From Octopus sinensis (Eukaryota): 64,000 nucleotides of DNA. Position numbers and translations under genes: made by a program. Location: NCBI RefSeq assembly GCF_006345805.1, contig NW_021833018.1, positions 1 to 64,000 of the forward strand, read 5' to 3'. Numbering within the stretch: position 1 is the stretch's first letter; every line of letters begins with the position of its first letter. Positions 1,343 through 43,578 of the stretch are shown here, piece by piece. Below the pieces are notes generated by a model that worked only from the letters and a program-made list of their open reading frames with translations, had not been told where the DNA came from and did no database searches.

Positions 1343-1639
1343 ATATGACTGTTTTATTGGTTAAGTGTTAAATATCAACATTTTTCGGGCAGACATTAAA
1401 TTACAAAACTCATCAAGGGACTATTTTCCATAACAGTCAGTGTCGGTTGTGCAAAATCATATTTTTTGAATCCCTTTCGCTAGTCTTTGACTTCTTAATT
1501 ATCCAAAAAGTCACTGGCATTAACACAATTATCTATTAAGCCTATACGATTTTTCAATTTGGTGGATTAAGTCAGGCGTAAACCTTTTTTTCAATTTAGT
1601 CTAGGAGAAATGATTGTTAGCTTGATTGTCCTAGGAAGT

Positions 1640-1990
1640 GAATCTATGCTTTAGCTGGGTGTATGGATGTGGTAGAACTTAACAACGATCGGACCTGTCT
1701 TTACCTTCCCTACAGATGTTCTAGCTTTATATGCCTTTGCAAATTCTATGAACGCAGAAAAGATCGATCAAAATATTCTGCCTTTTGCAACTGGCTATTT
1801 TTCAAGTTCTCCTTTGCGCCAAAAACGGCAATCATTTAAATCGCTGCTAATCATGTCATCTTCTCAAGCCATAGTTCCCGCTATTTCAACTATTACAGTA
1901 ATTGGTATGGCTTCTTTAGTTACGCTTTCGTAACTCAAGCAGTTTATCGACTAACAAAAGGAAATGTTTCTTATCCAGGTAAAATCGATA
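1640..1990 (+). pseudogene. Decayed bacterial FetB/YbbM (UPF0014)-like ABC permease fragment
   Basis: ALYAFANSMNA resembles the family GNSMNA motif, and QAIVPAISTITVIGMASL resembles AALIPTINSMxxVGLVSL. Intronless with stops. Recognition is weak. Confidence 0.35.
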
Positions 1991-2539
1991 CATTAACCTT
2001 TTTATTCTCTTATTTTTCTGATCAGCAGCTGTTAGGTCAAATCAGCAGCTGTTATGAGTTAATTATTCATTTGAGACCAAGCCTATGTCAAGTTCACCGC
2101 AAACTCCACTAGAATACTGTTTATTCTGCCTATAACCAAACAATTTGAAAATCGATCAATCTATAATCAAGAATCTAAATAATACAAATTCACCTCGCGA
2201 AGTTATCACCGATATTTTTGACTCAATGTACACGCGTGGATTTGGCTTAAGATATCTTGAACAAATCAAACAGAAAGTCCTGTTATTCTTCTCCATAATT
2301 AGTATTTTGAATGGATAGAGGTTGTAGAAACGGTCGAAGATTTACAAAATAACAGAAAAATTTGTAACAGCAAGCAACCGTCTAAGCAAAATCCACATTT
2401 CTTTACACCTTTTATTAAAAAATTCAATAAAAAGATCACTGGAAACTTTTACTATTCTCGTTTCAGCAGGAAATATTTACCCTATAAAAGGTAGACATGC
2501 AATTATGACTGATAACACGTGATAACCAGTTTTCAAAAA

Positions 2540-2905
2540 TGTGTGATGTCAATCACGCATTCTTTAATTCTACTGAAATTGACGTGATATCTTATTAACA
2601 ACTTAGTTAACTGGAAGTGTTTTGGTTTCTTTGAAGCATCTAGGATTCTTTCTTGTCCCAATGACCATTTATTTTGGAATCTTTTTTCCCCCATAAATGC
2701 GTTTAAATGATACGTTGTTTCTCTCTTTCCAATGCTGAAGCCAACCTGAATTAGGAATAAAATCATCCAGTTTCATTAACCAATTTATCCAATTAATCGA
2801 TATATATTGAATGGAAAGCATATAAAATATGTTATTGAAAATAAATTTATGTCATTAGCCGATTTATACAATTAACCAATATGCAATTGACCAGTGTATA
2901 CTGTA
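2540..2905 (-). mobile_element. pogo/Tigger transposase fragment within the bacterial-like block
   Basis: Minus strand reads NSGWLQHWKERNNVSFKRIYG (CENP-B-type HTH motif) and MVIGTRKNPRCFKETKTLPV. A TA|CAGTATAC terminus lies near 2905. Confidence 0.55.
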
Positions 2906-3113
2906 CCAAGTTCTTAGTTCTCTTTAAGAATGAACGCTAAAGAAAAAAACTTAATAAAATTTGAAGTCAAGATTTGTTATTAAAACATCTATTCTGAGCT
3001 TGATTTTCTTTCAGTTGAAATGAGAACTTTTCAGGGTTTTTGAATCCACATGCAGTGATCTCTTTTCCCCATTCTTACAATACATCTTCTATTGATTCTA
3101 AAAGGAAAACAAA

Positions 3114-3246
3114 ATGAAAAATACGTTCAGTAGATCCAGTAAATCAAGCAATTGGCATTGCTTCCCTTCATTTTCAAGAAGCTGACCATTTAATTGCTCA
3201 TGGCCGTCGAAAGCTAAACAACGCCGAACAAAAAATCCAAACACTG
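3114..3246 (+). pseudogene. xseB: Exodeoxyribonuclease VII small subunit remnant (bacterial)
   Basis: SLHFQEADHLIAHGRRKLNNAEQKIQTL matches the XseB C-terminal helix. The ATG at 3114 is preceded by an RBS-like AAAGGA (3101-3106). The 5' part is frameshifted. Confidence 0.6.
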
Positions 3247-4590
3247 AATAGCATTCCCAAAAAACTTAAAAAATTCACCTTTATTCTCAATGATAATGTC
3301 ATAGCAATTACCAAAAATGTAATCGCTGTAACAAGTATTCTCAGCCACTTTTTTAATAGCCTTATTGCTAACCACATTCACGACGACCTGATAAAAGTCA
3401 TTCTAAGAATTCCAGGTTACGTAAAAACACTTATCGAGCAAAGCAATCAGATGAAAGAATCAATGAAAAACGTGATTAGCACTGCTAAATTTAAGCAGTT
3501 TGGTCTCCATCGATGTGCATGAAATCAAAAAGCTTATCGATACTATCAAAGCACTGAAAGATCAGGACCCCTTTACCCTCGTTCACATTCTTCCAGTAAA
3601 AGGACAAGGCATAAAAAGAGAAGGCATGCATCCAACGCCTTATCAAAAAGGAAAACTATTTAATAGAAAAACAGGAGAATTACATCTTTATAAAAATCCT
3701 AGGCTAACATTCTTTAAAGTTTTTTGGAAAGCACGTTCTCAAGTTTGCTGAAGAAGATCCCAATATTGTTGCTATCACACCTGCTATGCACGTCGGCTCT
3801 TGCTCAGATGTTTTTATGAAGCGATATCTAGACAGCTGCATAGATGCAGTCATTACCGAGGGAAACTCTTTTGCCTACTCTCTAGGTATGAGCTATAATG
3901 AAAAACTAAAAGTCATTGCCTTTGTCTAATCAACTTTCCTCCAGCGTGCTTTTGATAACATTTATCACAATGTTTGTGTTCAAAAGCATCATTAATCGCC
4001 CTGGTCTAGCTTTTGATGATGGAATCACTGCTCAAGGGCTCTAAGATATTGAATGCCATGCCCAATATATTTATCGCGCAGCCTTGAGGCGGGAAGGAAT
4101 ATGCTAAAAGCCCTCCTACAAAGTGCTTTCGTATGGAAACTTCCATCTGCTATCCGCTATCCTAACTTACAGACAGTTGACGAAGAGATTCAATTCGAAA
4201 AAGTTTTTTTAGCAAAGAATCCCTTAAAAAGGAAAAAATCTAACGATAGTAGCTTTTGGCCACGTGGTGGATATTGGTCTGCAAACACGCGAGCTTTTGC
4301 TTTTAGAAGACCTTGATGGAACAGTCATCGACCAATCTTTGTTAAACCTTTGGATGAAGATACTTTGAAAATTCTCGAGGTGTTGTTATAATTGAAAAAC
4401 ATTCACTTCAAAGTGGCATGGGATCGATTATCAATTCTTTTATTGTCCAAGAAGGCTTGACTCATTTACACGTTAGGAAATCAGCATGCTAATCATGCAG
4501 ACTTGTTAAAAGAAGTTGGACTTTACCCCGACAATATTGCTACAGGTTTTAGAGACTTCTTCAAAACAAACTGCCAGGGTCCAATGAAAA
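3247..4590 (+). pseudogene. dxs: 1-deoxy-D-xylulose-5-phosphate synthase pseudogene, chlamydia-like, N-terminal part deleted
   Basis: Colinear motifs: FTFILNDN, IDVHEIKKLID..HILPVKGQG, EEDPNIVAITPAM, ITEGN (IAEGH equivalent), STFLQRAFDNIYHNVC, NAMPN, SAIRYPN, FVKPLDED, IEKHSLQSGMGSIINSF. Many stops and frameshifts, no introns. Confidence 0.92.
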
Positions 4591-5410
4591 AAATTGCTCT
4601 TTTTCCAAAAACTAAAGAGAAATCAAAAAATATCTTTTCTAAAAAAAGCATCCAGGTTGCTGTTGGAGATGATAAAGCAAGCGATCTTAAGAGGCACCTC
4701 TTTTCTCGGCAAACTCGTAGGATATTGAATGGTTGATCACAATGAGAGGAGATGGATCTATCTTGCGCGTAGCGCATAAGTACGCTGATATCGATGCAGT
4801 TATTTTATGAATTAATTTCGGGCATCTCGGGTTTATGGCAGATGTTCAAATCATCAATATCATCCTCTGACTGGAAGATTTAATTCACCGGCAGTTCACA
4901 TTTAAAAATAGAATAATGATCGAAGGAACATCTCAAAGTAAAAAGTCTTTCTTTTCCATAAAGAATTGTCTCCTACAACTAGTACACAATCCTATTATTA
5001 TTAAAATGGCAATTTATGTTATCTTTATCTGAATAGGCTTGAAGCTGATAGTGTCATTTTAGCAACCTTTAATATGTCAACAGCTTACTCTTTAAGTTGC
5101 CGGTAGTCCTATCTTAAGCCCTGATATTAATGCTTTTGTCTTAACTTCTATTTGTTTACATACCATTTCAAATCGTCCTTTCGTTCTTACACTAAACCGC
5201 AAAATTCAAAACGAGTATGTGAGTGAAAATGAGTCCATTGAAGTTTCTGCAATGGTCTCAACCGCTTTGAGCTAAAAACGGGAGAAACGATTAAAATCAG
5301 ACGCAGTCAAAAAAATTCAAACTCGTTAATTTAAACCACATTGACTTCTACTTTACTCTCCGAACAGAGCTCTGCTGATCCGGAAAGCTTCGTCAATCAA
5401 AGGAAATTGA
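4584..5410 (+). pseudogene. nadK: NAD kinase pseudogene (bacterial, directly after dxs)
   Basis: MKKIALFP.., ITMRGDGSILR (decayed GGDG), INFGHLGFMADV, EADSVILATFNMSTAYSL, HTISNRPFVL, FYFTLRTELCxSGKLR. Stops and frameshifts, no introns. Confidence 0.9.
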
Positions 5411-5426
5411 TTAAACAGTTTCTCTC

Positions 5427-5700
5427 ATGATTCCTTTAAAACTTGCGTTTAATTTGTCCGCTTTTAACCCCTGACTGCAGAAAAATTTGATTCATATCTT
5501 CGCTATCAACAAGATGAAAAAGCAATCCAAGCTCAATACTCTTTAGAAATGACCGGAATCATCTCTGCAAATCAAACGCATGGTGGTTTGATGCAAGCCC
5601 TTGGAAAACGCTTATACTACGTAACAACAGGTCCTCGTATTATCGATGGCCTTCATATTGCAGGGCGAACAATGGGATCTAAATTAAAACTAAAACAAAG
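5427..5700 (+). pseudogene. Probable next gene of the bacterial operon (unidentified)
   Basis: ATG 16 nt after the nadK stop, same strand, intronless: ..DSYLRYQQDEKAIQAQYSLEMTGIISANQTHGGLMQALGKRLYYVTTGPRIIDGLHIAGRTMGSK. Family not recognised. Confidence 0.4.
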
Positions 5701-6347
5701 CCAGGGCTTTTTTATAATCATCATATTACATGTTTTGTTGTAGGAACCAATATAAGAAGTTGTCATTATCCTTAATAGAAAGGTTTATAAAACTCTTAAT
5801 CCAAAAGACAACTCTTTAGACTTGTGATTTATCATAGTGAGCCATTAGATAAAGCATCTCTCAAAGTAAGTGGTGAAACCCCTCCTTTTTTCTATTATTA
5901 CATGCGTATTATGCAAGCAGATCAAATAAACTTTATAAACGTTAAACCTTGTGATAAAAACTATTAATAAAATCAAGTAACCTTTCAAATGGAGAGTTGC
6001 CACACCATCGACCGAGTCAGAGAATAATTCGGTGAACTGCTTTAATCCAGAAGAAATTGGAATAAGATCCAAGGCCGCCCCACCGCACAGCTAAAGTCTT
6101 GTTGTATACTGATAATGATTATACTAAATACCGTTTTCAATATCTTTTGATAGATGAAACTAAGATAGTTACTATCAATAGAGTTAAAAAATGTTAAGTT
6201 TTTCAAATTTTTAGGAATTATCTTTAGTCAGTAATTAATGTCAAACTAAGTAGGTCACCCTGTCAACCCTGTCAACAATGAAGGTCGCTCTGGTCGTCAG
6301 CGTGGGGCGCGACATAATACATCTCTCACATTGCAAAATATCATCTA

Positions 6348-7012
6348 TACCATTTCCCATACTAAGTGGGATAAACACCAAACTAAGTGGGATTGAGAGA
6401 AAACTAAATGGGATTAACATCAAACTAAGTGGGATTAATAACGAACTAAATGGGATCAATAAAGGATTACTTTTATTATAAATATTATATTTTGACGCAG
6501 CAAATAAAAATGCCACGTAAATCATTAGAAGAGAAAAATCAAATACATAGAAATAAAATACATTTAATTTCAGTTGCAGAATCAGGTGGGGATTGGAAAA
6601 AAACGGCAATTGAACTCAATATCTCGAGAACAACAGCATATCGTTGGATAAGGGATGGAGTTAAACCTGACACGAGAGGTGGAAATTATAGAAAAAAGTT
6701 TGACAAAGAACATATCGACTTTTGTATATCATGCATTGAAGACGATAGCACAATTACCCTTCATGGAATTAAACGAAAATTTGAATTAATTTTTCCGAAA
6801 TTATCAATATCAAAATCAAGTATCGCTCGACATCTCAAGTATCGTTAACATAAAATTTTAAACAAAGAATTTTTTGGTGTTAATCCCATTTAGTTTGCTA
6901 TTAATCCCACTTAGATTGATGTTAATCCCACTTAGTTTGACGTTAATCCCATTTAGTTTTCTGCTAATCCCACTTAGTTTGGTGTTAATCCCATTTAGTA
7001 TGAGAAATGGTA
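6348..7012 (+). mobile_element. Internally deleted Tc1/IS630-like element with 21-bp repeat-array TIRs
   Basis: TIRs TACCATTTC(C/T)CATACTAA(G/A)TGGGAT with flanking TA on both sides. Five left and six right inverted 21-bp units (core ACTAA(G/A)TGGGAT). The internal ORF from 6501 encodes only the HTH region (KTAIELNISRTTAYRW..RGG..ISKSSIARHL). Confidence 0.85.
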
Positions 7013-7877
7013 TATTGTTTACTAATCTAAAATTGTTTGCCAAAAAAGGCTTGAATAATCAGCAATGACTTCACAATGACTACATAAGATTTCATTTTGA
7101 AATGCGTCCAAATATATCAAGGCAAAAAATAGGTGACGAAAAAGTCAAAAAAATAGAATGAGAATAATTTATAATTTAAAATTAACAATTAATTAGTTTG
7201 TTGTAGATTTATTAAAATAATTATTTATTTATTAAATCGAACTTGTTGATGTGGTTTATTTTTGCATTCATCTTTTACAAAATAATTTCAGTGACTGATC
7301 TCCAATGTGAAATCAATGAAGACATCCTCTCAGAATGGAACAACTATGTTGCCAACTTCAGTATTGTATATACTTTCAATGTATTAGAGATCAACAACGA
7401 GAGCCATTCAGAATCTGCATTTTTAAGCGTAACATGGACATTATCAATGAAAACAACAAATTATATGAATCTGGAAAGTCGAGCTATAAAATGGCATTAA
7501 CCAATTCACTCATTTAGTTCTTTAACTGATTATTATGTAGACTGCCGACGAAGTTCCCAAAGGATTATCACCAAATATTTAACCCTCACTAATTCTAATT
7601 TTTCACTAATTCTATTTTCTCTATTCTAATTTTTCTCTATTAGTGGCGTCATATGACGTCATGATTTTTGTCAAGTTTCACAAAAAAATAAAGGTATAAG
7701 ACGCGAACTACGTAATTATATTATAAACATGGGGAATTTTTGTATATTATAAAAAAAAGGAACAATTAGAACTGATGAAATAAAACGGATTTTTCCAAAT
7801 TAGAAAAATTACAGAAATATGTTGACAAGCGTTTCAATGACGAGCATTTCAATGATTGTCTTTATTAAATAAAAAAA

Positions 7878-8575
7878 TTTAACGCGGACGATATCTTGGT
7901 TACGGATGTCTTGATGTGGGGACCCCGACACAGAGAAGGTTTTCCTGGAGCAGACTAGAACCGTACTTGGAGGAACTTGAAATCTGGTGCAATGGTAAAG
8001 GCTTGAATCTCGCTCGGGACAAAAGTACCATTTGTTGGATTTCAATGGGTCGTGACAAAAAACCGACTTTCGAGGATTATGGGAACCTGATTATATCGAA
8101 GAACCTACGTTACCTGGGAGTAACTATAGACCCCACCGGGTCATACAAACCCCATGTGCATGCAAAGCGGAAACAAGGAGCGAAAATCCTAAAAGGACTG
8201 AGGCGTTTTTGTCTAAGCGCAGAAACGTTTCTACACATCTACCAGACTTGTGTTCAGCCACTAATAATCTATGGTTCGGAGGGCTGGTACCAAACTGATG
8301 AAAGGGACCTTCTAATCGCCAAACTCGAAAAAACCAGACAATTTGCCATCAAACTGCCATTCGGCCTGGAGCTCAGCAGTCCGCTGGAGGACCTGCATGA
8401 GCGGAGTGTTGACACGATAGACGCGATCCTTGCAAAAACTCGAATTCGCTGAGGAAGATAAGACAGTCTCCCGGGGCAAAACCGAAGTTGAGACCTTCGT
8501 GGCTCTCGTTATCAAGCCCCCTAAGCTCTAATTCCTCGGCCACTTTTCTTTTGGAGCTATTGTATTAAATAAACC
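7878..8575 (+). mobile_element. 5'-truncated APE-type LINE, RT C-terminal fragment
   Basis: NADDIL (YADD-like), LRYLGVTID, IYQTCVQPLIIYGSEGW, followed by an A-rich 3' end. Confidence 0.85.
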
Positions 8576-9099
8576 ATATTCTTCACTATTAAATAAAAAA
8601 ATTTAAATTGAAAAAAATTAATAGATCCATATTGCGCATTTTGGGTTCAAAAATGTGCAAACTATTATTTGTGAATTTAAAATTTTGGATTAAATTGTAA
8701 TTTTGGTCTTAATGGGAGTAGTGCAATTCCACAGTTTTAAGTGTGTAGAGACATAAACCAAAGTTCCAGGTTTGTCTCCTAAAAACTATCTCAGCAGGTT
8801 AGTTATAAGGAATTTCCTTACAGACTATTGGTAAACAAACAGAAACCATTTAATACACATAAGATTTGTATAATGCCAGACAAATAAGATTAATTTTATC
8901 TTTCTAATTGTGATTTCTTTTCTGTAATTGATTGTCGCTATTTGATCTCGCTCTAGATAAAATATATATGTTTTGTATTTAATAGAATTTGAGACTACCC
9001 TATCCTGTGTCAACACGATAAAGAATCATTTATATATTCATGTATATATAAAAGTATTGGGAAGCAGGACTTCAATTCATCTTTTGTTATCATTTTATT

Positions 9100-9585
9100 T
9101 TCTTTATCATTAACCACAAATTTTAACATACCTACCGACTCGTAGATATTGTAATAAGAACAATCTCACAATAATAACCCTTTTTATACACTTTCCACAT
9201 TTTGAGAATTGAAAGCAAATTCGTCGTGCTCACGATCAGCTAATCAAAAACTTATAAGCAAAAAATATGTTGGCAATCTTAGCTACATGCTCACCTAACC
9301 AAAATATACAAACCAGTGAACTCCATGTGAACTTTACCAATGGCCATCGTTCAGTAAAGTGTCTGTAAAAACAACAGAACCAAATTTGACAAATTTTCTG
9401 AAATTGAAAGTATGTGGGGCATGAATTTAATTAATTTTAATTATTTTCCTAACATTTGACATACTTTCCATTTCACCTGCAATAACCACATTGATCTGAT
9501 CATATTTGATCAATAATAGCTTGTAGCCCAGATCCACACAACATGTCGGCAGTATACGCGGAAGATGTGCTTTGAATTCCTATCT
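9100..9585 (-). pseudogene. Acetyl-CoA acetyltransferase (thiolase) pseudogene fragment
   Basis: AYTADMLCGSGLQAI (active-site CGSG), VVIAGEMESMSN, TLLNDG, HMEFT|GEHVA (19-nt intron at 9295-9313), EHDEFAFNSQ. It has in-frame stops and one degraded acceptor. Confidence 0.8.
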
Positions 9586-9940
9586 TAAGTAATAGTTGTA
9601 TAGTACTGGAAAGAAAAGAACAACAAAAAAACAATTCATGCACATAAAAGTTGTTTTTATTTATTTAAATAATTTTAAAATATTTTTGAAATAAAATTCA
9701 TATAATAAATTATTTATTAATAACAAACATAACTATAATTTGCATCATATTTTCTTTATTATTTTATATACATTTTTAGTTTTTTAATTAAACTAATATC
9801 TATTGATTAATAATTAATTTGTTATATAAAATAAGCTAATTTAATTATTCTTAATACTTTTTTCAAGTATCGATTTTTAACTAAATAGACTATATCATTA
9901 AATCATTCTAGTGAGACCCTTTGGAAATTGTTATTTTAAA

Positions 9941-11936
9941 ATGTCAAGAAATGAAATTTTGGCTCCCTATATAGTTTATATCAAATATTAAAATTGTAAT
10001 AGACATTACTCAGACAACTTCGAAGAGTTGATTTGCAAAAACTTTGTCATTTTATTCATGCAAAGATTTCTGGAAATAAAAATGATCTGTTGCAACGAAT
10101 TTATGAGAATCTAGAAACAGTTTACAATCCCGAATTCCTGTCAGAAATCAAATTTATTTTTGAGTACACCAAATAACAAATTTTATTTTAGACATAGAGA
10201 TAATGCTTTATTCTCATTAAAAACGATATTTCCTACAGTAAAACATGCTTCCCCAATTGATTTGAATTCTCTTAAATTCGAAGATATTCCTTATTATGAA
10301 AACCTTCACACACTCTTATACCCAACTTTAATCAAGAATGGTAAACCTGCCATAATTATTTTAGGTGACAAAATATCTGACGGCGACTGCAGAAACGTGT
10401 TTACTTTTGCAGAGTCAATTTACAATACTTTCCCAGATTTAAAGTAATTGTTTTTTAACAAGTTATAAAATATGTTTACCAACTATATTTATTCAATATA
10501 AATAATTTTTGATATTTTATAACACAGATTTTTTGACTACATGGGATTCAGAACTGACATTCAAGTACAACTTAGGTTCAGTTTAAAATTAATAATTCTA
10601 GAATTGGCGTTTTGGAATCAAATGTTTTGCGTGATAAATATCCGTCAACTTTAACGTGTAAACTCAACTCAAAATCTGTCGATCTTCCAGTATTAAGTCG
10701 ATCTTTTATTTAGCCATACCTCCCTATCAAGCGACAAAACGACGTACAGAAACGTCCGCGGATTCCCGTTGATGTGACTATGGTGACAATCACACACCCA
10801 AATAGCACAAATTGTTTATTTGTCCGTAACAGTTCTAGCGAAAAAGTAATTTTTATATTCATTTTTAGGATCAATATTACGCGGGAATTTTTATTGTTAG
10901 AAAATTATTAGTCAGTGATTTAATAAACAAAATACAATCTCGATCTCCAATAACAACTGAACAGACTCGGAAATGGAGTTTGACCTAATAAACTGACTTT
11001 TCAGTCACTGAACGTCTTTCTGCAAACAATGAAACTGACGAACCTGTTGTGACTGATATATTCCTCTCTCTCCTATGTCCTGTTTCCATATTTTCATTTA
11101 CTCGTATAGATATCCCAGACTCGTTTGTCCCTTCCGGTCAGATCGACGCAATGTGACCACATTCAATGTTTTGATGCCCATACTTTTCTCACAATGAATG
11201 AGAAAAGACCTAATTGGCGTTGTCCGATCTGTTCTCGGCCTATGGACTTTTGCTACGTGAAGATTGACGAGTATCAGTCTTACTATATTATCCCATAAGA
11301 TACGTCTCCTTCATTTTAATGCAGACTAAAACTCACGTGAGATCTGTTGGGTTTGACGAGAATGGGCTTTGGCACTGTGTTTCAGATAAAGGGGAACCTG
11401 CTAGAGGTTATTTGCCATTGTTGATTTTTCTAGAAATTTTTGATACCACTGAACATAAAGAACCACTCCGATAACTGAGAGTGTGGTTAATATTTCGAAG
11501 GGCAGACGAGGTTATTGTCATTGAAGATTCTGACGATGAGGAAAAAGATAAAAATAATCTACAAGTTGAGAATGAACAGCCCTCCTTAGTCCTCATAGAA
11601 GGATCGGTACGTTCTCTTAATCAGGATATCCAAAATGAACCACATGTTCTACGACTTCCCTTATCTTCTAATAAGAGGCCTTGTTTAGACTCAATGAATA
11701 CTGTATTTAATGGAAGTAGCGACATTACTCATCGAGACATTCCGTTTAAAAACTCGGCTTTTAATAGCCAAGTGTTTCACCCGTTTGGTTCATCTCAGTC
11801 AGTGCCTCCTCGATTGTTCACAGTTTCTAATTATAATCAGCCATTCTTCCACGGATTGATCTTTCCAACTTCGATGTCAAATAATACTCCCCAAGGTGAT
11901 AGAAACATTTTTTTGGACAAGTTACCAAAATTATAA
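9941..11936 (+). CDS. PIAS: PIAS-family SUMO E3 ligase (SAP, PINIT, SP-RING, SIM)
   Basis: The spliced frame gives SAP (LRRVDLQKLC..SGNKNDLLQRI), PINIT (FEDIPYYENL..IQVQLR..KRPRIPVDVT), SP-RING (SLLCP|ISQTRLSLPVRSTQCDHIQCFD..NEKRPNWRCPIC) and a SIM/acidic patch (VIVIEDSDDEE). About 10 introns, mostly 23-30 nt. The junction at 11471-11500 is non-canonical. Confidence 0.93.
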
Positions 11937-12014
11937 CAATTAAATTTTTTTCTTCAATAAATTACATTTCAGTAATTTTTATTAATTTATTAAATTAATC
12001 ATTGTAACTTATAT

Positions 12015-12908
12015 ATGGATAATTCGCATGCTTGTCCTGTTAACTCACATGTCTTCTAACGAAGCTGGTATTCAATTTTGCTTCTTACTTTTCTAATTAA
12101 TTAAATTTTAAATGAAGTTTCTTGCCCAATATCAAGAGAGAAGTTGAATAATAATACGAAAATCTCTAACCCACCAGAAGGAGGATGTCCAATGGCACAT
12201 AACAATATAGAGATTGTAAATGATCGGAATATGGTTGTTAATAATGTGAAATCTTAGAAAATAGATGCCAGATTTTAGTAAGGATACAACTTCTGAGAAT
12301 TTCTGTAATCTAAAAAAAACAAGAGAAACGTCAAGTATTCCAATGTCTTCTTCTGATTCAAAAAAATGGACTTATCCGTCTTCTGAAATGTTTTACCGTG
12401 CTATTGTTAGGAAAGGTTTTTTTAAACTATTATAAAAATTTTAATCAGGCCACCAATTTGAAAATGGACAACTTGATTCTCAGTTGATTGATGATGCAGT
12501 GAAAGCCCATAACTCTACTAACGAGGCTACATGGAAGGAGATTCTCAAATGGGAAGCCCTTCACGCGAAGTTTTAAATATGGAAACAATATATTAGTGAA
12601 TGTCCTAGTCCTAGTTTACGCCGTTTCCACGGGAGAAATGACGATATTTCTCCTCGTGCAAGAATTAGAAATTTTTTCGGGCAAGAATTAGAAATATTAA
12701 AGTTTAATTCTGTAGGTATCAATTACCCTTCGACCGTCACGACTGGTATGTCGATCGGTGTGGTTTTGATGTGAGATATGTTATTGACTACTATGACTGT
12801 TCGAATGAAACACTTCTTGATGTAAGACCTGCCTTGGATTCATTTTCGGCGGTTATGGATCGTTTTAAAGTTATGTGCTATCGGTGGTACTGCAATTGGA
12901 TAAACTAA
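12015..12908 (+). CDS. HCCS: Holocytochrome c synthase (cytochrome c heme lyase)
   Basis: CP heme-regulatory motifs, [69 protein letters not shown]. Introns include 12068-12117 and a GC-AG intron at 12681-12715. The start is either ATG 12015 (one base out of frame) or ATG 12049. Confidence 0.95.
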
Positions 12909-14230: not shown

Positions 14231-14289
14231 AAACAAAAATAAAAAACTTATTTATAACAACAATCAATGAAAACAATGACGCTGTATAA

Positions 14290-14620: not shown

Positions 14621-14633
14621 CGGAACATATTAA

Positions 14634-25287: not shown

Positions 25288-25430
25288 TATTCGTTTCTAA
25301 AGATCATTAAATGTGATAGTAAGATTCGTAAATTTTTCTTAAACTTAATTTTTTATAATAATTCATTAATGATTTATTTAAAAATGTTTTAAATAATAAT
25401 TGTGTTATAGTTGTAAATGTTTTATCCAAA

Positions 25431-27006: not shown

Positions 27007-27470
27007 CAGGTGTTCTCAACCGGGGGCGAATCGCCCCCTAGGGGCGAAACTTTTGTACAGGGGGGCGATAATATATTTAATAAAATATTCGAATTTTAAT
27101 ATAATACAAGTATTTATACATGATCATGCGAGCAGGATCGAACCTTTCAGTAGGATCTCCCTCGTTCGGATCGGCGATCACGGGGATTATTATAATTAAC
27201 TGGCTTACCCGTCTTTGGTCTTTAATAAATAAATAATCTAAGATGTCTTCTCGCTCAAATAAGAAAAGTCGTCATTATCAAAACGAATATTTAAAATATG
27301 GGTTTATTCAAGTACTGAAGATACAGAACAACCATATTGTCTTATTTGTCAATGTTCTTTCTCAAATGAGGCGATGAAGCCATCACGATTACAGAATTAT
27401 TTAAAACGCAAGCACCCGGATAAAATGTCAAAGCCGATTGAATATTTTCAAAATTTAAAATACAATTTTA
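27007..27470 (+). mobile_element. hAT element, 5' fragment (BED-like zinc finger)
   Basis: CAGGTGTTCTCAAC terminus. RHYQNEYLKYGFI..PYCLICQ..SNEAMKPSRLQNYLKRKHP. Confidence 0.75.
27121..27236 (+). mobile_element. 5'-truncated copy of the SINE at 43579-44010
   Basis: Near-identical to 43890-44005 (GATCATGCG(A/G)GCAGGATCGAACC..GGTCTTTAATAAATAAATAA). Confidence 0.85.
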
Positions 27471-30560: not shown

Positions 30561-30579
30561 CAGATAACTTAGAATACTA

Positions 30580-34499: not shown

Positions 34500-35819
34500 T
34501 ATCAATTGAGATATATTCAGGAATTTTGATATTACCAGACTTCTTCATTTCGTCTCGTCAATGATAAATACATCCATCTAAACTTTTCTGATAATAGCCA
34601 ACAGTTCTGTTGCCCGCTTTTGAAGAGAGCAGGCATTAACCAGGCTAATCCTGGTTACATTTGATTAATTTGGTGACTGTTTCCCTTTTTAGGATAGCCA
34701 CAAAACAGAATAAAAATTTAAAATCTTTTTTACTTCTGGTCACATCCTTATAGACATTTCAAGCTTACTGATTAAATCATGTCGAGATCGACCCGTCATC
34801 GACCTAGCTCCCGAAGTCGACAAAGTCTGCATAGCCGAGTGAGATACAGTTTCCTCTGTTTGTATTCCAACTTTAGGTGTTTCCCTAACTATTGGAACGT
34901 TCAATCCTGCATATTACTTCAAGGCTGCATTTTTTATATCTGTTTTCCGAAGCTTCTTTTAACAGTTTCTGCACCAACATTTTCTCATTTTTCGGCTTTG
35001 AAGCTTTTTCAGCTTTCTCACAGCCCCGATGATTTGACAAGTGGCTTGGAGAACCGTAGTTGAAGCATTTTTTCATGTTACAGTCCTTGAAATCTTTCCA
35101 AGCATTTGTGCCTGAACAAAATAGACATTTTTCTGATTTTTACAAAAACGTGTTATGTGCCCAAACTTTTGGCATCGATAGCAATGAACTTCCCGTTTTC
35201 TGTACCACTCGGCCTTTACATTTTTCAGTTTCAGAAAGAGCAGAGGCAGATTCAGGGCGAAAAGCAGAGTCTATGAGCGATGATGCGAAAAACGAGTCGA
35301 CAGTTTACATCCCATACAAGGACAAATCTCATCTTGAACGGGAATAATGTGGACCCGCCAGGAGGAACTTGAATTAATCATCTATCTGCCAAATATTATC
35401 TTTTTTGTTTTTAAAAATCATTTGATTTACCGATAGTTTGGAATCATTAGAACCTTGAAGCTAGGGGAAAATGAATGAAATAGCTATTAATCATTGTGGC
35501 TCTTCTTATAACAAAATGCTGAAATATTTCGTTTTTCAAACAGAAAGTAACAATTAATAAATAGAACTTTGATTCTTAAAAAAATTTTACCGGAAAAACC
35601 TAAATCCATGGCTCCGATCTTAAAAAATATCCTTAATGAAAGTCATAAAATAATTTAAGATATTTTTATTATCATATTTACGTTTTTTGCGCATATTCTG
35701 AGACATTCGATTTAATGCTAACAGAGGTAATTTTTAAGTCTGATTTGAAAATAGAGATAAATTACCAACAATTTTGAAAATCGAATTTTTAATTAGATAG
35801 TTTAATTAATAAAAGATTA

Positions 35820-36000
35820 ATAAAATCAGATATTTTTGTCCATGACAAGATGAGGAATACAATTACACTCATTGAAGTTGGGATTACCTCACAAAATTGC
35901 CTAAAGCAAGTTGAAGTGGAAAAGTTCCACAAATATGACTTTTTGGCAAATGAATTGGGGGCGATCCATCGGGCTAAAGTGAAGATAATCCCTGTTGTAC
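35820..36000 (+). mobile_element. R4/Dong-like retrotransposon restriction-like endonuclease fragment
   Basis: SDIFVHDK..ITLIEVGIT..EVEKFHKYDFLANEL..VKIIPVV matches the PD..IEV..EK..KY RLE pattern. Confidence 0.75.
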
Positions 36001-36439
36001 TTAAATTAATTTACTAATCTAACTTATTTTATGATTTTATGACGGAATTTTTGCTATTTTTAATGAATTTTGTGTCCACAAGAAATAATTACAGGCCTCG
36101 ATTGGTGTCACATAGAAACTTTAAGGCTTAGTTTGCTATGCCAGGCTTTCCTCATTATAGCACATGTATGGCCTTAAAGAACAATCACAAATTTTTCTCA
36201 CTAGTCAAACAACTATATGGATGACAAATAAATTTAACTAAACAAATTACTCCACCAATCAACAATAGTCATGCACCACTACCCAAAACATCAAGCTATC
36301 AGTCTGTCAATTCTTATCGTGATCAGTTTTTTTGCGTTGAGTCAAATTGATCCGATAGCTCCAGTTTTGGTGGTGGTCTTATGTCAATTCTTTTAAATTT
36401 GAGCTTTGCAACTATATTCCTTAAAACCCCAAAGATGGT

Positions 36440-37080
36440 TGCAGAAGAAAAGGGAATTGCTGGTTTGCAGTTTGGCTTGCAGAAGAAAAGGGAATTGTTG
36501 TTTTAAGACTCCTGATGCCGTATCGAATGCCACGGCGGATCATACATTTGCCATTTTCTTAGGATTACTGCGAAAAGTATCTGAAGGGCAAACCTATGAT
36601 AGAGAAAACAAATGGATGGGCTGGGATCCTTAGCATTTTTTAGGAAAAGGCTTACCAGGAAAAACATTTGGCATTATCGGCTGTGGTGGGTTTGAAAGGT
36701 TGCTGTTCGTCGAGCAGTTAAACTTGATCTCAATGTCATTTGTTATCATTACCGTAAAAATTGATGCTAGGGTTCGTGAGTTGAGCAAAGTTTCTTAGAA
36801 AGAAATGCTCGAGACAGTTGATTAACCCTCTCTTTATTTTCCATTAACGAAAAAAACGCGAGGGATGATTAATTATGAAGCGATTTAACAAATAAAAAAA
36901 AGCCTAACATCAACATAGCTCAGAGTCCCATCATTAAAACAAATGATTTGGTACCTGCACTAAAAAAAAACCTGCTAGGTGGAGCACCTTTAGATGTGAC
37001 AGATCTTGGACCTTTGTTAGGAGATTATCATCCTCTTTGTCATTTAGAAAACTTTTTAGTTCTACCTCATATTGCTTTGA
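36440..37080 (+). pseudogene. D-isomer-specific 2-hydroxyacid dehydrogenase (glyoxylate/glycerate reductase-like) pseudogene, intronless
   Basis: KTPDAVSNATADHTF, WMGWDP.HFLGKGLPGKTFGIIGCG (Rossmann), FPLTKKTRGMIN, INIAQSPII, GGAPLDV, ENFLVLPHI. Many stops and frameshifts. Confidence 0.85.
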
Positions 37081-37089
37081 GACTCAAAC

Positions 37090-39180
37090 TTGACATTTGC
37101 AAATAACATCGTTGCAGATGTGAAAAAATGGTTGACACCAAAGGTGCCCATCCACTCTCTTGCAAACAAAGCATTGGTTTGGGATTTAACGTGTTGACAC
37201 CAATTCCAAAACAAACACTGTCTCATTGGATGTTTATCTGGGTTCTGCAGTAGATGCTGCAGAACAAAGAAAAATTGCCAAATATAAAAATCTTGGACAA
37301 CGGTATCACGTCATTCCTATGGCTGTAAAAGCATCTGGGGTAACTGGCCCTCTAACGACTTCTTTCATCAAAGAGGTCGGCAGATAAGTTGCTGTGCAAC
37401 GTAGAGAGCTTCGAGGGCTGCAAAAAACGGCTATGCGACAACTCGCCTATAGACGAGTTGTCGCCTAACTCGCCTAAATTTATTTGGCGACAACTCGCCT
37501 ACTTAAAATAAATAAAAAATTTTATTTTTACCAGATTAAATCTAATTAATTAAAATTTCAACAATTTTGTTTACTTTAATCCTTATTATGACTGACTTTG
37601 AACTGCTTAAAAGCCAAAGAGGTGGCAAACTTTTACTACACCGGAACTATTTGTATAATACAGATAGAAAAAAAGACGGTCTTACCTATTGGAGGTGCAG
37701 AAATCGAGAATGCAGGGCGAGGTGCACGGTGGATGCTCAAAACAAGATGGCCCCTTTGAGGATCATGAGATAAAAAGCATGAAACTAGTTTCTGACCTGA
37801 AAGATTCCGCAAAGGCGTCAGAAGACAGAACTATGAATGTGGTGTCAAGAAGCCTCATTGGAGCCAATGTTGACGTCATTAAAATCTTGCCAAAGGAACG
37901 TTCATTGACTCGTCTCGTTCAACGGGAAAGAGAAACACTGATACCAAATTTTGTTCCGACCATTCCTGAAATTCCTGAAAGTTTGTGGTATAATGATCGG
38001 GGCGAAATTTTTTATCGCAAGGATTCTGGAATTAATGATGTAAATCGTTACGTCATTTTTTGTTCGGATTATCAGATTGACATTTTGAAAAAATCAGATA
38101 TCTGGGTTATTGATGGTACCTTTAAAAGCGTCTCTAATCAATTCGAACAAATGATTACAATACAAAGAAAATACTTATGTAAATTCTGGCCTCTTGCGCA
38201 CGCTCTTTTGCTCAACAAAACAGAAAATTCCTACTGTGCATTATTTGAAGAAATAAAGACACTTGTTGTTACTTCATTAGCAAGTATTTTAATTGATTTT
38301 GAAAGGGGTTAATTAACTCCACAAAATCAGTTTTTTCGTCGTCTAATGTATTTGGCTGCAATTTCCATTTCGGCCAAATCATATGGCGGAGAATACAATG
38401 TCTTGGTCTTGTGGGAGCCTACAAAGACGTTTCATCGTGGGAACGAAAATTATTGAGAAAATGCTACCATTTAGCTTTCATCCCTGTGGAAAATGTTTTA
38501 ATGGAATTTGAAAAAATTTCTCTTGATGCGACAAAAAAAGAAAACAACCAACAGATAATGAATTTTTTGGTTTATTTTAAAAACCAATTTATTGCTGACC
38601 CATCTTATGACGTCAGTTTTTGGAGTTGTTTTTATCGAGTATTAAAGTCAATGCCCAGGACGACCAATTCATTGGAAGGTTGGCATAAGCTGTTGAACAG
38701 TTCTTTTAACAGAGTGCACCCAAATTTGGCAGCTTTTGTCAATGTTTTGGCCAGGGAAGAACAAAGACTTTTTGTGAAAATGACACAAATTAAGTCAGGA
38801 AGGTATCTTGAAGTGTCTGCGACAGACTGCAAAAAGGAACTTGAACTGAGAATAGCATGTGAAAATTTTCATGAATTTGAAGTAGATTGCTATTTTAAGC
38901 TAATTGATGGTTTGATTTGCTTTAAAAGTTCAGAATAAACAGTAATTGTTTTAAAATTTTATTTTATTTACCTTTAAAATATTTTTCTTCGTAGACGAGT
39001 TGTCGCCAAAAAAATTTAGGCGAGTTAGGCGACAACTCGTCTATAGGCGAGTTGTCGCTCAACGCCTCTAACGACTTCTTTCATCAAAGAGGTCGGCAGA
39101 TAAGTTGCTGTGCAACGTAGAGAGCTTCGAGGGCTGCAAAAAACAGCTGGGGACCGCATTTGAGAACCGCTTATCTATAA
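37090..39180 (+). mobile_element. CRE-clade retrotransposon 3' fragment (zinc knuckle plus RLE), split by a MULE
   Basis: RCEKMVDTKGAHPLSC, LVWDLTC, AAEQRKIAKY, VIPMAVKASG. Confidence 0.75.
37429..39066 (+). mobile_element. Mutator-like element (FLYWCH plus MULE transposase), decayed
   Basis: TIRs of about 75 bp built on GCGACAACTCGCCTATAGACGAGTTGTCGC. FLYWCH (SQRGG..YLY..YWRC..C) and MULE core (IDGTFK, LIDFE, GCNFHFGQ, RTTNSLEGWH). Confidence 0.92.
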
Positions 39181-39272
39181 TACCTGAATGAATCTACTAA
39201 AAACTCAAAAAAATCTAGAAAGGCCTTATAGAAAAACTTCTTTTTTAAGTCTGCAAGATCAAATGGTTTTTC

Positions 39273-39623
39273 ATGAAGTTGGTAAGCCTCGAGCGCTTTA
39301 ATTTCTCAATTGAAAAGGTCTTGGATGATAGGTTTGCTATATTGATCGACTCTCTCCATCAATTAGAAATCAATATTCATGAGATGAGAGAATGTAATCT
39401 CCTAACAGAGGTTTTCGGAAAACCTTATGTCGAATTACAAATAGATATACGAGAAATAGAATCTATCAGATCTGATACGGTCCAAGTAGCCTATACTCCC
39501 GTTGAAGATTTTACCCTTTACCCTGTTCCAATTTATTCCAACTTTTTTGAGTCCTATCCAGTCTACTCTGCATTATCTGAAACAATAAAAGACAAATACT
39601 GTGCAGGACGATTTTTTCGTTAA
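39273..39623 (+). CDS. Hypothetical 116-aa ORF or terminal exon
   Basis: Open, protein-like composition, no motif recognised. Confidence 0.3.
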   Translation: MKLVSLERFNFSIEKVLDDRFAILIDSLHQLEINIHEMRECNLLTEVFGKPYVELQIDIREIESIRSDTVQVAYTPVEDFTLYPVPIYSNFFESYPVYSALSETIKDKYCAGRFFR

Positions 39624-39829
39624 TTTGATAATTTTATAAATTAATAAATAGCTTACTACAAAATCTGCTTTAAAATCGTACAGGAATAATGAAAATATTT
39701 GCTTAAGAATAGATTCGTTTATTGTTTGAATTGTTAATTTTTTTAAATGTTTAAATGACGCTTTTTGTTAACAATTTAGTCAATTTCGCGTTTAAATCTT
39801 TATGGAGTGTATTTTAGTTTCGATTTCAT

Positions 39830-41482
39830 TTTATTTAAACAAAAATGAAAATATGGAAAAGTAATTCAAATTCTTTTTTTTTGAAATAGCAAATAGTTGT
39901 CTATTTTCGATTGCAATCATAAAAGAACAAAAATTTAAGATATAAAGAAGTTTATTCCGAAACAAAATTTTTATAGTTTTAACGATAGCTAGTCTATTAA
40001 TATCGATCTCGTAAGGGGCCTCATGATTGATCAACATATTCGTCGAACTAATTTGGACCCTGTCGTGCTGTAAAATCCCAACGACAGTATATTCAGTACA
40101 ATCCAAATGTTCGTGGAATGGTCGACGGCGTGTTGTTGTATTCGTATCTGTGTCGGTGTGGATGACCACTTTCGTCCCAGAGGAAAGTCAAGGATATCAT
40201 TCCTCCAATTAGATCGTCTCCTCATGGATTCAGCAGCACTATTAGTATTCCTCCTCGCAATATCTCGTAAATCTTCGGCTGCTGCAGAAGCTACTACAAG
40301 TCGATCCATCTCGTTGTCGTTTGTTTCCACATCAAGTCCATGTAGTTCTTGTTGAATTTGCTCGGTTCTTGGCTCTTCATTGTAGTCAAGTTGATTGATG
40401 GAATCAATATATTCAATGAGTGCCTGAGTATGACCTCGAGCCATTTGTTCTCTAATCCGTGGGCCATACATCAAATGAACAGGAGAAAAGCGCGTTGTAG
40501 AGTGTATCCTTGTATTATATGCGTATGTTATATTTTCGAGGATATCAATCCAACGAAATCCATTCCCGTTGGTTAATAACGTCGAACTGAGCATCCATTT
40601 GAGTGTCTGATTAAGTCGTTCCACTTGACCCTGTATCCAGGGACATCGGGCCCTCCCCCTGACATGGCGAATTCCAAATTCTTCGCACAACTGCGTCATC
40701 CGCGAGTTGCAGAATTCAAGTCCATTGTCGGTATGTATTATGAATACTTCCCCCAAAGAAAGAACAACACTTCGTATCCTCGGTATCACATCAGCCGAGT
40801 TCTTTGATTTCAGTGCTGAAGTCCAACAGTATTTCGTAAACGAGTCCATTATCACCAGCAACCATTTTTCGCCACTATTTTGATCGCTGTAATATCTTAG
40901 GTCCACAAGATCGATAATCAGCCTTTCTCGTGAAAACTTGGCAATTATTGGAGTAATTTGTCTCCTGGTTGCGAGCGTACGACGAGCTATGCAAGTTGTA
41001 CATGCACTTAGAACATGATTCATATGCCAAGTTCTTCATATGATTGAATAATTATCTCGACCTGGATGCCCCGTATCCAGGTGACACAACCGGACATAAT
41101 CATAAAGTTGTTCTTGTTCTTCAACAGTAAAAAATCGGACAAAATGATCAACTCCACGTTTAAACATAAGATTCGGCGGAAAGTGAATAAACTTACTCGC
41201 CCGGAGCCTGAAGGAACGAATTTCATTGGCGGTACTGAGTGTTGACGTAAATTCGCATTGACTAGATAATCAATAATCTGATCCCTTTCATAATTGCACA
41301 TCGATAGATATCCCATGCTCAAATAAAAATTTATTATTTTTTGCAAAAAATAAAAACATTTTCAAAAATAAAAATGATTATTACTAAATAGACATATAAT
41401 TTGCTTAATTTATTTATATTTGAATACTATGCGCTCTATTTACTACGGATCGCTATTCCTGGAATCCCTATTTACTGCGACA
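39830..41482 (-). mobile_element. Second Ginger-like/KRBA2-type rve integrase element, intronless
   Basis: 5' terminus TGTCGCAGTAAATAG at 41482. H2C2 tail CTTC, RERLIIDLVDL, IMDSFTK, HTDNGLEF, QGQVERLNQTLK, YNTRIHSTTRFSP. The 3' TIR was not found. Confidence 0.85.
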
Positions 41483-41538
41483 ATAAGTTTTATTATAATT
41501 AGCTTTTAGCTCTTTTTAAAGAAGGTTTTCTTCTTGAG

Positions 41539-43405
41539 TCAAAAGCTCTTTATTGAGGTAATTGAGTTGAATGTTTTATTTAGCACGAAACCAAGAGAAC
41601 GAAAACAAGTTATGTGGTTAAAGATACGGTCTTTTATGAGACTTGACATTGTTTCTTCGCAGTATTGACCGTTTATTGAGGTAACGAAGAGAATAGCTCC
41701 AGTAAAGGCAATTCCTAAGAAAATTAGAAAGAGGTAAAGAGTAATTGAGATAACAGCTCCTGTTCCAACAAGCTCGATTTGGTCAATTTGAAGCGACGAT
41801 GAACTTGACTTACCCAATCTAGAGCCTTCCATGTCAATCGCTGCTTTTCCTTTGACCTTTGACTCATTTTTAGTCGAATCAAAGAAAGAGTACTTAACGA
41901 CTTTGTTCGTGATATTTTGGAATGCCTCTAAAAGGAAACTCATCATGAGAGAGGTAAGACCTACCTAGTGCATAAATAGATCTAATGTATTTTGAAAAGA
42001 CACCGCAGAAAGAAAACACCTCCAGATATTCCTATAGCTCAAGAAATGATTTGTGGACTAAAATGCCAGTAAAATTTTCTAAAAATGTTTCCCCCAAAAA
42101 AGAATACAGTTATAAGAATTACAACTCCAACAATTGTGGTCACTCGTTCCATAAACATTTGATAATCTGCTTTTGTAGGAAATTACATCTCTGGGTGAGC
42201 TTTTTAAGTCACTTCAGCCATATTAATCGTAATGGCGTATCCGATGACAAGGACAACGATAGCTAGAAAGTACTTTGAAGATAAAATATGCTTGATACTT
42301 TTGCGAAGTGAAAACTCAGTTTTTTGGTGACTGCTTGCTTTGTTACATTTGGATCATAGTAGCGCTTGTCGTTGCGGACATAGCGGTTTATCCTCCAATA
42401 AACAACCATGATCATGATCCTTGCAACAAAAACATATCCTAATAAAGATTGCAGAGTAAAACAGCAGCTTTGGCCTAGAAATTTCTTTCCATAGTAATAA
42501 CTGAGAGGACAGGCTAAGATTGGTGCGAGATCTATTGTTGCAATAAAGAGGGTATAGGTCCTTTTTGCTTCTGTTACTTTGCAGATGTGATTGGCAAATC
42601 CCCAGGAGAGTAGGAAAATACGACCTGTCCCCAAAGCTTCATTGTAACAAATCCGAATAGTGTATTTTACACCAAGATGAGTTGTGAACCAAATTGCTGA
42701 TTTAGTAGAGCTCAAGCACTTATGTTAGGGTACAAGATGAAACTATATATTTGAACAATAGAGAGGAAAATAGAAATAATTCCGTAAAAAAAGTTTAGCA
42801 TTTGAAGAAATTACTAAGCTTAGAATACCCATAGCACAAAGGATCGACGAAAAAAGACAAACTCGCCTTTTAGGATACTAATAACTTCTGCTCCAGAATG
42901 TTCTGCAGCCATTACAATAGGGTCCTTGGAAAGAATTATTGTGGAGTAAACTAGAGAAGCGAGAAATTTAAGAAATAAGAGATGGAACATCTTGTCGTCG
43001 GCTTCAGAGCCGGGCTCCGCAGCCAACCTGGCCGAAACGCTAAAAATCAAGAAATACAGTGCATTATCTCACCGCCACATCTTTGCCCCGATCGCAGTGG
43101 AGACATCGGGAGTCCTCGGCCCCAGAACTAAAAAATTCCTTATTAAACTAGGGGATTTGGCAAGCAGAAGAAGAAATGATCATCGGGAACGGACATGGCT
43201 TTTCCAACGCATATCAATAGCCATCTTGCGTGGGAATTGCCATTCCATCCTATCCTCTGCTGCTAATTAAATATACATAATTATCATAAAAAAAAATTAG
43301 AGATGGAATACTTTTTTAGTTTGAAAAAACAAAATGGCCAGATTTTTTGAACTCAAGAGGACTTATAGGATTCGGTACTATTTATGATCTGTTATTTCAG
43401 GACAT
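41539..43405 (-). pseudogene. Nucleotide transport protein (NTT/Npt/Tlc ADP/ATP translocase family) pseudogene, chlamydial/rickettsial type
   Basis: Colinear motifs: IWP..KLKK, KDPIVMAAEHSGAEVISILK, SKLSN, SWGFANHICKVTEAKRTYTLF, YWRINRYV..DKRYYDP, FQNITNKVVKYSFFDSTK, ESKVKGKAAID.EGSRLGKS. Intronless, with many stops and small deletions. Confidence 0.92.
42988..43298 (+). mobile_element. 5'-truncated CRE-clade retrotransposon inserted in the NTT pseudogene
   Basis: RLE C-terminus (AETLKIKKY..FAPIAVETSG..LFQRISIAILRGN), A-rich tail, and 8-bp TSD AGATGGAA (42980-87, 43299-306). Confidence 0.88.
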
Positions 43406-43453
43406 TATTCTATCTACATACTTAGCAAAAAGTAACACAAACAATGAAAATAC

Positions 43454-43482
43454 AAAAAAAACTCCGAGAATTTACTCGGGGT
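43454..43482 (-). terminator. Bacterial-style intrinsic terminator upstream of NTT
   Basis: Minus strand ACCCCGAG-TAAATT-CTCGGAGT followed by a T7-8 run (one stem mismatch). Confidence 0.45.
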
Positions 43483-43578
43483 CTTAAATCATTTTTGGAA
43501 TTTTGAATTTTATATTCAAAGTTTTAATTTAGACCAGAGGTGTCAAAAATGAAGCCGTCGGAACGTATAGGTGGAGCC

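Follow-up and report, generated by a model that had tools for sequence, protein, structure and literature searches.

To our knowledge, almost all known transfers of bacterial DNA into animal chromosomes involve Wolbachia or one of a few other insect symbionts. Here we describe two blocks of decayed chlamydial genes, block A and block B, in a 64,000-nucleotide stretch of Octopus sinensis DNA (contig NW_021833018.1 of assembly GCF_006345805.1, positions 1 to 64,000 of the forward strand; “the window” refers to this whole stretch). The closest described systems are the Wolbachia nuclear insertions (nuwts), also called “genomic fossils”, with examples in Dictyocaulus viviparus (PMC4046930), filarial nematodes (PMC12693587) and Drosophila ananassae (PMC4558871). 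Like the two blocks described here, these insertions span several genes in their bacterial order and are non-functional and neutrally decaying, with host repeats inserted in them. A full-text literature search turned up no account of multi-gene blocks of chlamydial pseudogenes in any animal genome, which is no proof of novelty.

An earlier note on this DNA had pointed to three decayed bacterial islands at about 1.4-5.9, 36.3-37.1 and 41.5-43.5 kb, and had proposed either repeated transfer from a long-term intracellular bacterium or the rearrangement of one event. The islands are real: the DNA in them is bacterial-derived, decayed and intronless, with matches well above chance level (Pfam E values of 1e-5 to 1e-25, tblastn E values down to 1e-123 and blastn identities of 82-87% to chlamydial DNA). 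Their extents and number differ from those given, since the second and third belong to a single block. Overall, we read both blocks as nuclear fossils of chlamydial DNA that probably entered the germ line, with at least two pieces joined into the chromosome in one episode and neutral decay since then; we put the probability of this reading at roughly 0.85.

Results

We screened the window for bacterial domains by scanning six-frame translations, with stops masked, against Pfam. Between 1 and 41.4 kb the scan covered stop-free stretches of at least 40 residues, with minisatellite-repeat stretches left out, and the part from 44.9 to 64 kb was sampled. Outside the bacterial inserts, the stretches between 1 and 41.4 kb yielded host genes and transposons only. 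Two metagenome contigs from the Joint Genome Institute (JGI), Ga0180434_10000199 (93.6 kb; L001) and Ga0180433_10000305 (85.7 kb; L008), match the window at 82-87% over 5.7 kb by blastn. Both have a G+C content of 40-41%, and they carry adjacent JGI sample identifiers.

Block A spans 3172-5476 on the plus strand and contains a fragment of xseB, an N-terminally cut dxs, nadK and the tail of the next gene:

3172-3250, plus strand: remnant of xseB (exonuclease VII small subunit), residues 39-63 (tblastn E 2e-8)
3235-4580, plus strand: pseudogene of dxs (1-deoxy-D-xylulose-5-phosphate synthase), donor residues ~171-638 (Pfam, tblastn)
4584-5393, plus strand: pseudogene of nadK (NAD kinase), residues 1-280 (Pfam, tblastn)
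5414-5476, minus strand: last 21 codons of the donor's convergent 680-residue hypothetical gene, at the right end of the block (tblastn E 0.004)

The Pfam scan detects DXP_synthase_N, Transket_pyr, NAD_kinase and NAD_kinase_C on the plus strand at 3.2-5.3 kb. By blastn, block A is 83.5% identical to L008 over 2355 columns, in a single 2355-bp alignment to L008 6539-8884 that includes the tail of the 680-residue gene; the xseB piece matches L008 5923-5997 at 90.7% over 75 bp. The xseB remnant is fused straight to dxs residue ~171, with ~542 bp of donor DNA (the end of xseB and the N-terminus of dxs) deleted. Of the gene order xseA-xseB-dxs-nadK that is common to chlamydial relatives, the block retains xseB-dxs-nadK. 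The dxs pseudogene is spread over three frames with at least eight in-frame stops, and nadK carries several stops and frameshifts.

The earlier note had drawn this island wider, and only its core is bacterial. Bacterial homology is absent from 1380-3170 and 5477-9000, hence also from the 5477-5900 part of the island, in a six-frame Pfam scan of 1201-6000 on both strands and in relaxed tblastn searches of 1-3300 and 5300-9000 with xseA, tpiA, secG, def and the downstream genes of three relatives. The sole signal at these flanks is a weak pogo-type helix-turn-helix on the minus strand near 2.7 kb.

Block B is one collinear segment, 36472-45239, which joins the two right-hand islands and includes a chlamydial piece at 39131-39588 that had been missed between them. 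Its donor-derived parts are:

36472-37070, plus strand: pseudogene of a D-2-hydroxyacid dehydrogenase (glyoxylate-reductase-like), donor residues ~86-283 (Pfam 2-Hacid_dh_C, tblastn, NCBIfam naming of the donor gene)
39131-39588, plus strand: C-terminal half (residues ~158-312) of a chlamydial 315-residue hypothetical protein (tblastn E 6e-43, 74%)
41503-42996, minus strand: pseudogene of an ATP/ADP (nucleotide) transporter of the TLC/Npt family, residues ~25-502 (Pfam TLC E 2e-25)
43291-43536, minus strand: transporter start (residues 1-25), upstream spacer and a 43-bp piece of the donor's neighbouring 195-residue gene (blastn)
44434-45151, plus strand: two chlamydial hypothetical pseudogenes, one of 129 residues nearly whole and the first ~89 residues of one of 303 (tblastn E 8e-43 and 2e-19)
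45122-45239, minus strand: C-terminal piece of a Fic-domain protein, residues 200-238, at the right end of the block (tblastn E 3e-7)

Searching the L001 proteins against the window recovered six genes in L001 order and relative orientation, with the whole segment inverted: the 2-hydroxyacid dehydrogenase (36481-37070), the 315-residue hypothetical protein (39131-39575), the transporter (43385-41504), the 129-residue (44440-44757) and 303-residue (44894-45151) hypothetical proteins and the Fic-domain protein (45238-45122). The same neighbourhood order is kept in two further chlamydiae. Pfam hits agree, with 2-Hacid_dh_C at 36.5-37.1 kb and TLC over three frames on the minus strand at 41.7-42.8 kb.

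Across all pieces, block B is 82-87% identical to L001 at the DNA level: 87.3% for the dehydrogenase pseudogene (L001 20146-20747), which lies in two frames with stops; 82.7% for the 315-residue remnant (11839-12271); 82.3% for the transporter (10080-11461); 84.6% and 86.0% for the pieces at 43291-43536 (9889-10096 and 9470-9512); 87.0% for the region of the 129- and 303-residue genes (3776-4478); and 82.4% for the Fic piece (2909-3010). Relative to L001, donor DNA is missing in amounts of about 7.9 kb, about 5.0 kb and about 0.8 kb. The ATP/ADP transporter, a hallmark of chlamydial energy parasitism, is broken over three frames by about 11 stops, and its longest open stretch is 150 codons. 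At its 3' end (41561-41672), the pieces homologous to the donor share 13 bp of donor coordinates (L001 11449-11461) and are set apart by ~110 bp of extra window sequence, which looks like a small local duplication or insertion.

Two further intronless, decayed stretches had been suggested as more of the same DNA. Most of the one at 43.5-44.8 kb does belong to block B (43291-43536 and 44434-45239). The other, at 52.3-53.0 kb, gave no Pfam match in six frames (52.1-53.2 kb) and no match to the chlamydial loci we compared.

We next consider the donor. The earlier note had named Chlamydiae and Rickettsiales as groups to search against; the first holds, and we reject Rickettsiales, as all top matches are to Chlamydiota. 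A transporter pseudo-protein stitched from the window matches only chlamydial nucleotide transporters, with the best match (67%) on L001. The stitched dxs pseudo-protein likewise matches only Chlamydiota: its top matches include “Chlamydiales bacterium”, followed by Simkaniaceae and Neptunochlamydia, and Protochlamydia stands far down. A scan of JGI metagenome contigs with this pseudo-protein returned a single locus, L008, and in a scan of species representatives the closest named genomes were the metagenome-assembled genome “Simkania sp.” OZ244056.1 and Simkaniaceae bacterium M30B2. The dxs neighbour-joining tree puts the window sequence in a cluster with L008, L005, L002 and OZ244056.1, adjacent to the M30B2 group; Parachlamydiaceae, Rhabdochlamydiaceae and Waddliaceae stand apart. 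This tree represents one gene by a distance method under the depositors' names, and the third piece of its stitched window sequence is imperfect; the DNA comparison carries the weight on the donor.

In that comparison, the other chlamydial loci (L002, L005, L006, L007 and L009-L012) are 64-69% identical to the window. Among the relatives themselves, L001 and L006 share 73-79% identity and L008 and L009 share 76%. With 82-87% to L001 and L008, the window is thus nearer to the organism behind these contigs than related chlamydial species are to each other. Consistency of best-match lineage and divergence, which the earlier note had proposed as a check, holds for every island. By these sequence comparisons, both blocks trace to one donor lineage of Chlamydiota, within a Simkaniaceae-affiliated clade.

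We then compared the decay of the two blocks, assigning each mismatch to a donor codon position with the donor as reference (L008 for block A, L001 for block B). Per G/C site, changes to A/T at positions 1/2/3 occur at.184/.211/.193 in block A and.190/.182/.230 in block B; per A/T site, changes to G/C occur at.045/.034/.024 and.043/.049/.060, respectively. Block A has no excess of third-position mismatches, and there is no deficit of change at positions 1 and 2. Codon-position rates are equal once base class is counted, so nearly all of the divergence is unconstrained, as dead DNA in the host would show, and not bacterial evolution under selection. It follows that the donor belonged to the species of the metagenome bacterium or to one close to it.

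Substitutions amount to 270 of 2304 aligned sites in block A (11.7%) and 434 of 3423 in block B (12.7%), a difference with z about 1.1. Overall, 19.4% (A) and 20.0% (B) of G/C sites changed to A/T, and 3.4% (A) and 4.9% (B) of A/T sites changed to G/C, a roughly five-fold bias per site. Transitions outnumber transversions about 2:1 (173:97 in A, 291:143 in B), and small deletions outnumber insertions about 4.5:1 (19:4 in A, 30:7 in B; 49 vs 11 in total). The earlier note's “broadly similar decay” is thereby borne out by counts, and blocks A and B are indistinguishable in the amount and kind of their decay. Equal rates and an equal spectrum in turn argue for one donor lineage and one age. Two specific mutational processes were also considered and rejected: CpG-methylation-driven decay, as CpG sites changed at.15-.17 and non-CpG sites at.14-.15, and deaminase-type strand-coordinated hypermutation, as C-to-T and G-to-A changes show no strand-wise clustering (runs test, |z| at most 1).

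The blocks have a G+C content of 36-37%, down from the donor's roughly 41% and towards the host value of 35%. Stops or frameshifts disrupt every gene (the 25-residue xseB fragment has none), and no gene retains an intact reading frame. This bears on whether the host acquired and used any of these genes, for instance as a domesticated nucleotide transporter or dxs. There is precedent in plants and algae, where transporters of chlamydial type and dxs have persisted since an ancient transfer (PMC2376095, PMC2490706). Here, however, the longest open stretch of the transporter is the 150 codons given above, constraint leaves no sign, and we saw no introns or eukaryotic signals, so that we give host use almost no credence.

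Block B is also interrupted by host DNA, which adds a further set of features:

37349-39148, plus strand: host FLYWCH-MULE DNA transposon (Pfam FLYWCH and MULE; self-blastn)
40031-41023, minus strand: open reading frame (ORF) of a host retroelement integrase (Pfam rve E 1e-13)
42997-43290, plus strand: host repeat-encoded protein fragment at transporter codon ~25, in the gap between donor-homologous segments at 42987 and 43291
43889-44006, strand not assigned: host dispersed repeat (self-blastn; second copy at 27122-27237, 95%)

The assignment of 42997-43290 to a repeat comes from reading the sequence, with no tool match. The MULE element has inverted repeats of 68 bp that are 97% alike (37435-37502 and 38991-39058) and is much younger than the chlamydial DNA around it. 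A left half of the 315-residue gene was looked for to the left of this element and is not supported. Outside the inverted repeats lie direct repeats of 84 bp, 98.8% alike (37349-37432 and 39065-39148). They far exceed the usual MULE target-site duplication, and as they did not align to the donor gene, they may belong to the element.

Live chlamydiae offer another origin for such sequences, as chlamydial cobionts are often co-assembled with animal genomes (PMC11521371) and their reads could have been mis-joined to host contigs. Against contamination or a chimeric assembly stand the stops and frameshifts throughout the genes, a divergence that is even over codon positions, the G+C drift from about 41% towards the host's 35%, and the host transposons and repeats within the bacterial segment. 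A live bacterium would show no such decay or insertions, and we therefore exclude this origin, for which we see only a negligible chance.

The DNA between the blocks informs the number of transfer events. Multi-exon animal genes with Pfam E values down to 9e-36 lie at 10006-12890 on the plus strand, outside the bacterial inserts, and the earlier note's statement that the islands are separated by host genes and transposable elements is correct:

~10.0-11.9 kb, plus strand: multi-exon host gene for a PIAS-like SUMO ligase (Pfam SAP, zf-MIZ)
12180-12890, plus strand: multi-exon host gene for a cytochrome c heme lyase (Pfam Cyto_heme_lyase; animal-protein matches)

Helitron, Tc1, pogo, rve and MULE elements are present as well.

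One very large chlamydial insert could have been broken up later, with blocks A and B as its surviving ends or pieces and the DNA between them deleted, rearranged or replaced. In its favour, A and B agree in donor lineage and decay, and deletions of several kb as well as transposon insertions are seen at this locus in block B. Yet the multi-exon PIAS-like and heme lyase genes lie between the blocks, and stop-free stretches of at least 40 residues from 6.0 to 36.2 kb contain no bacterial domain (Pfam). Moreover, the donor loci are on different contigs, of 85.7 and 93.6 kb, at an estimated distance of at least 20 kb in the donor; for the orientation seen in the window the estimated separation is >130 kb, and extra rearrangements must be assumed. 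A single collinear insert is not supported, given the intron-bearing host genes and absence of bacterial domains between the blocks and the separate donor contigs, and we consider the broken-insert account unlikely.

Two independent insertions at clearly different times, from a long-lasting symbiont of the host lineage, would also place host genes between the blocks, and repeated transfer is common for Wolbachia (PMC4046930). But substitution level (11.7% vs 12.7%), spectrum and indel bias cannot be told apart, and the nearest relatives of both blocks come from two JGI samples numbered next to each other; well-separated events are accordingly a distinctly poorer candidate than a broken insert. 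That the blocks are equally old and share a donor speaks for one transfer episode, in which nearby breaks took up several pieces of the same bacterial genome more or less simultaneously. Our ranking thus runs from several fragments in one episode, through a rearranged larger insert, to two well-separated events. Of the alternatives in the earlier note, the origin from one intracellular bacterium stands, most likely in one episode, and a collinear single insert is not shown.

Four points weigh against the reading of both blocks as fossils of a single germ-line episode. Equal decay fits two events close in time equally well. That L001 and L008 come from one organism is suggested by similar divergence, G+C and sample series. 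The slight third-position excess in block B (.23 vs.19), absent in block A, indicates some bacterial divergence there. Finally, integration rests on the window as given in one assembly, in which the blocks are flanked by host genes and block B is interrupted by host transposons and repeats.

Two more features lie outside the blocks:

36073-36422, minus strand: decayed fragment of a eukaryote-type 18S rRNA (Rfam SSU_rRNA_eukarya, 51 bits)
near 49.8-50.0 kb: host ubiquitin-conjugating enzyme fragment

The 18S fragment corresponds to Rfam positions ~1118-1666 with internal deletions, lies 50 bp left of the edge of block B, and shows G/C-to-A/T changes at 33% of conserved G/C positions. We considered and rejected a chlamydial 16S origin, since its alignment carries eukaryote-type signatures; it is the only rRNA-like piece in the window, which holds no bacterial rRNA. 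It may be filler DNA captured at the block B junction.

The window is A+T-rich, with a G+C content of about 35% and a CpG observed/expected ratio of 0.91. Long reading frames are scarce, and no tRNA genes were found in it. A stitched heme lyase protein has its matches among animal proteins alone, none of them close (44-54% identity), and the best lean weakly to arthropods. The gene is very compact, with its exons within ~700 bp and hence very short introns; this compactness and the low identity suggest a fast-evolving or poorly sampled animal lineage.

Eukaryotic mobile elements are abundant, including Helitron PIF1 helicases, Tc1 and pogo transposases, rve integrases, FLYWCH-MULE, hAT, and reverse transcriptases of long interspersed nuclear elements (LINEs). 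A Helitron helicase fragment is present in at least three copies (18.05, 20.9-21.5 and 32.7 kb), and helicase fragments are flanked by long minisatellite-like tandem arrays at ~15.0-17.3 kb and ~19.3-20.3 kb, which translate as repeats of “KMNNKKVLDSHDVVPQNLQAKKLKKIIFCVFV”. Another repeat, with identical peptides “TGTIGHMENSVVDLCNIKFRQLPISKEDAVHFLQN” and “DPTTGVHTQTVERMWGSAKCKNKAQ” in two copies at 25.4-26.1 and 48.1-48.8 kb, resembles an ISXO2/IS1595-type transposase, but Pfam gave no hit at the threshold used. As a host repeat, such a bacterial-looking transposase family could be mistaken for a bacterial insert. At 55632-58292 lies an apparently intact LINE ORF of 886 residues with endonuclease and reverse transcriptase, and a 2A-like motif, DIEQNPGP, is located near its N-terminus (58068-58091, minus strand). 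2A-like self-cleaving peptides have been described in some non-LTR retrotransposons.

Discussion

We propose that an intracellular chlamydia of Simkaniaceae type passed DNA into this animal's germ line. The chromosome would have taken up at least two chlamydial pieces about 31 kb apart, probably by end-joining repair: one of about 3 kb (xseB-dxs-nadK) and one of about 18 kb, from the Fic gene through the ATP/ADP transporter to the 2-hydroxyacid dehydrogenase. No transferred gene stayed functional, and both pieces have since decayed at the host's neutral rate, with about 12% substitutions, a five-fold G/C-to-A/T bias and more deletions than insertions. Block B further lost about 13 kb through a few large deletions and gained host transposons. 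A neutral divergence of about 12% would imply long vertical inheritance.

The earlier note had imagined an unknown, possibly extinct symbiont. Public metagenomes contain a donor-like bacterium, which differs from the inserts almost only by what looks like host-side neutral decay, so the lineage is extant and this part of the proposal falls away. The animal that hosts the L001/L008 bacterium may live at the JGI sampling site. We can imagine, but regard as doubtful, a large, genome-wide set of chlamydial inserts with the near-identical JGI bacterium as a present-day, still associated symbiont. If true, it would be the chlamydial counterpart of the big Wolbachia integrations and the first host-symbiont pair to allow dating of a chlamydial germ-line transfer to an animal, and the host's neutral mutation spectrum could be read directly against a living donor.

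A multi-gene, syntenic and datable chlamydial fossil in an animal would extend such transfers to a second major group of intracellular bacteria, and it would mean that a Simkaniaceae-type chlamydia once lived in or close to the germ line of the host lineage. With the sequence of a bacterium almost identical to the donor at hand, neutral mutation in the host can be read cleanly from the 5.7 kb of dead DNA that align to it. In genome projects, such inserts are liable to be mistaken for contamination or live infection.

Among known systems, the chlamydial genes of plants and algae (PMC2376095, PMC2490706) share the donor phylum and two gene types, a nucleotide transporter and an enzyme of the methylerythritol phosphate (MEP) pathway. 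Those genes are ancient, functional, intron-bearing and expressed, whereas the window holds younger, dead fragments in an animal. The chlamydial cobiont of Xenoturbella bocki (PMC11521371) is also of the Simkaniaceae group and from a marine animal, and its dxs is among our matches at 45% identity. The X. bocki genome has 43% G+C vs about 35% in the window, its chlamydia is not the nearest relative of the inserts, and the genome paper reports essentially no chlamydial transfer to the host (PMC11521371).

Nuclear insertions of organelle DNA (NUMTs and NUPTs) likely share the mechanism, in which stray DNA is captured at double-strand breaks, sometimes in mosaics with filler DNA, and then decays neutrally. 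The 18S fragment beside block B would fit such a mosaic. They differ in source, which is an organelle there and a bacterium here. In both mechanism and anatomy, the two blocks resemble the nuwts or “genomic fossils” of Wolbachia, and like them they can be used to infer a past symbiosis. The difference lies in the donor phylum: nuwts come from Alphaproteobacteria, and the blocks described here from a Simkaniaceae-type clade of Chlamydiota.

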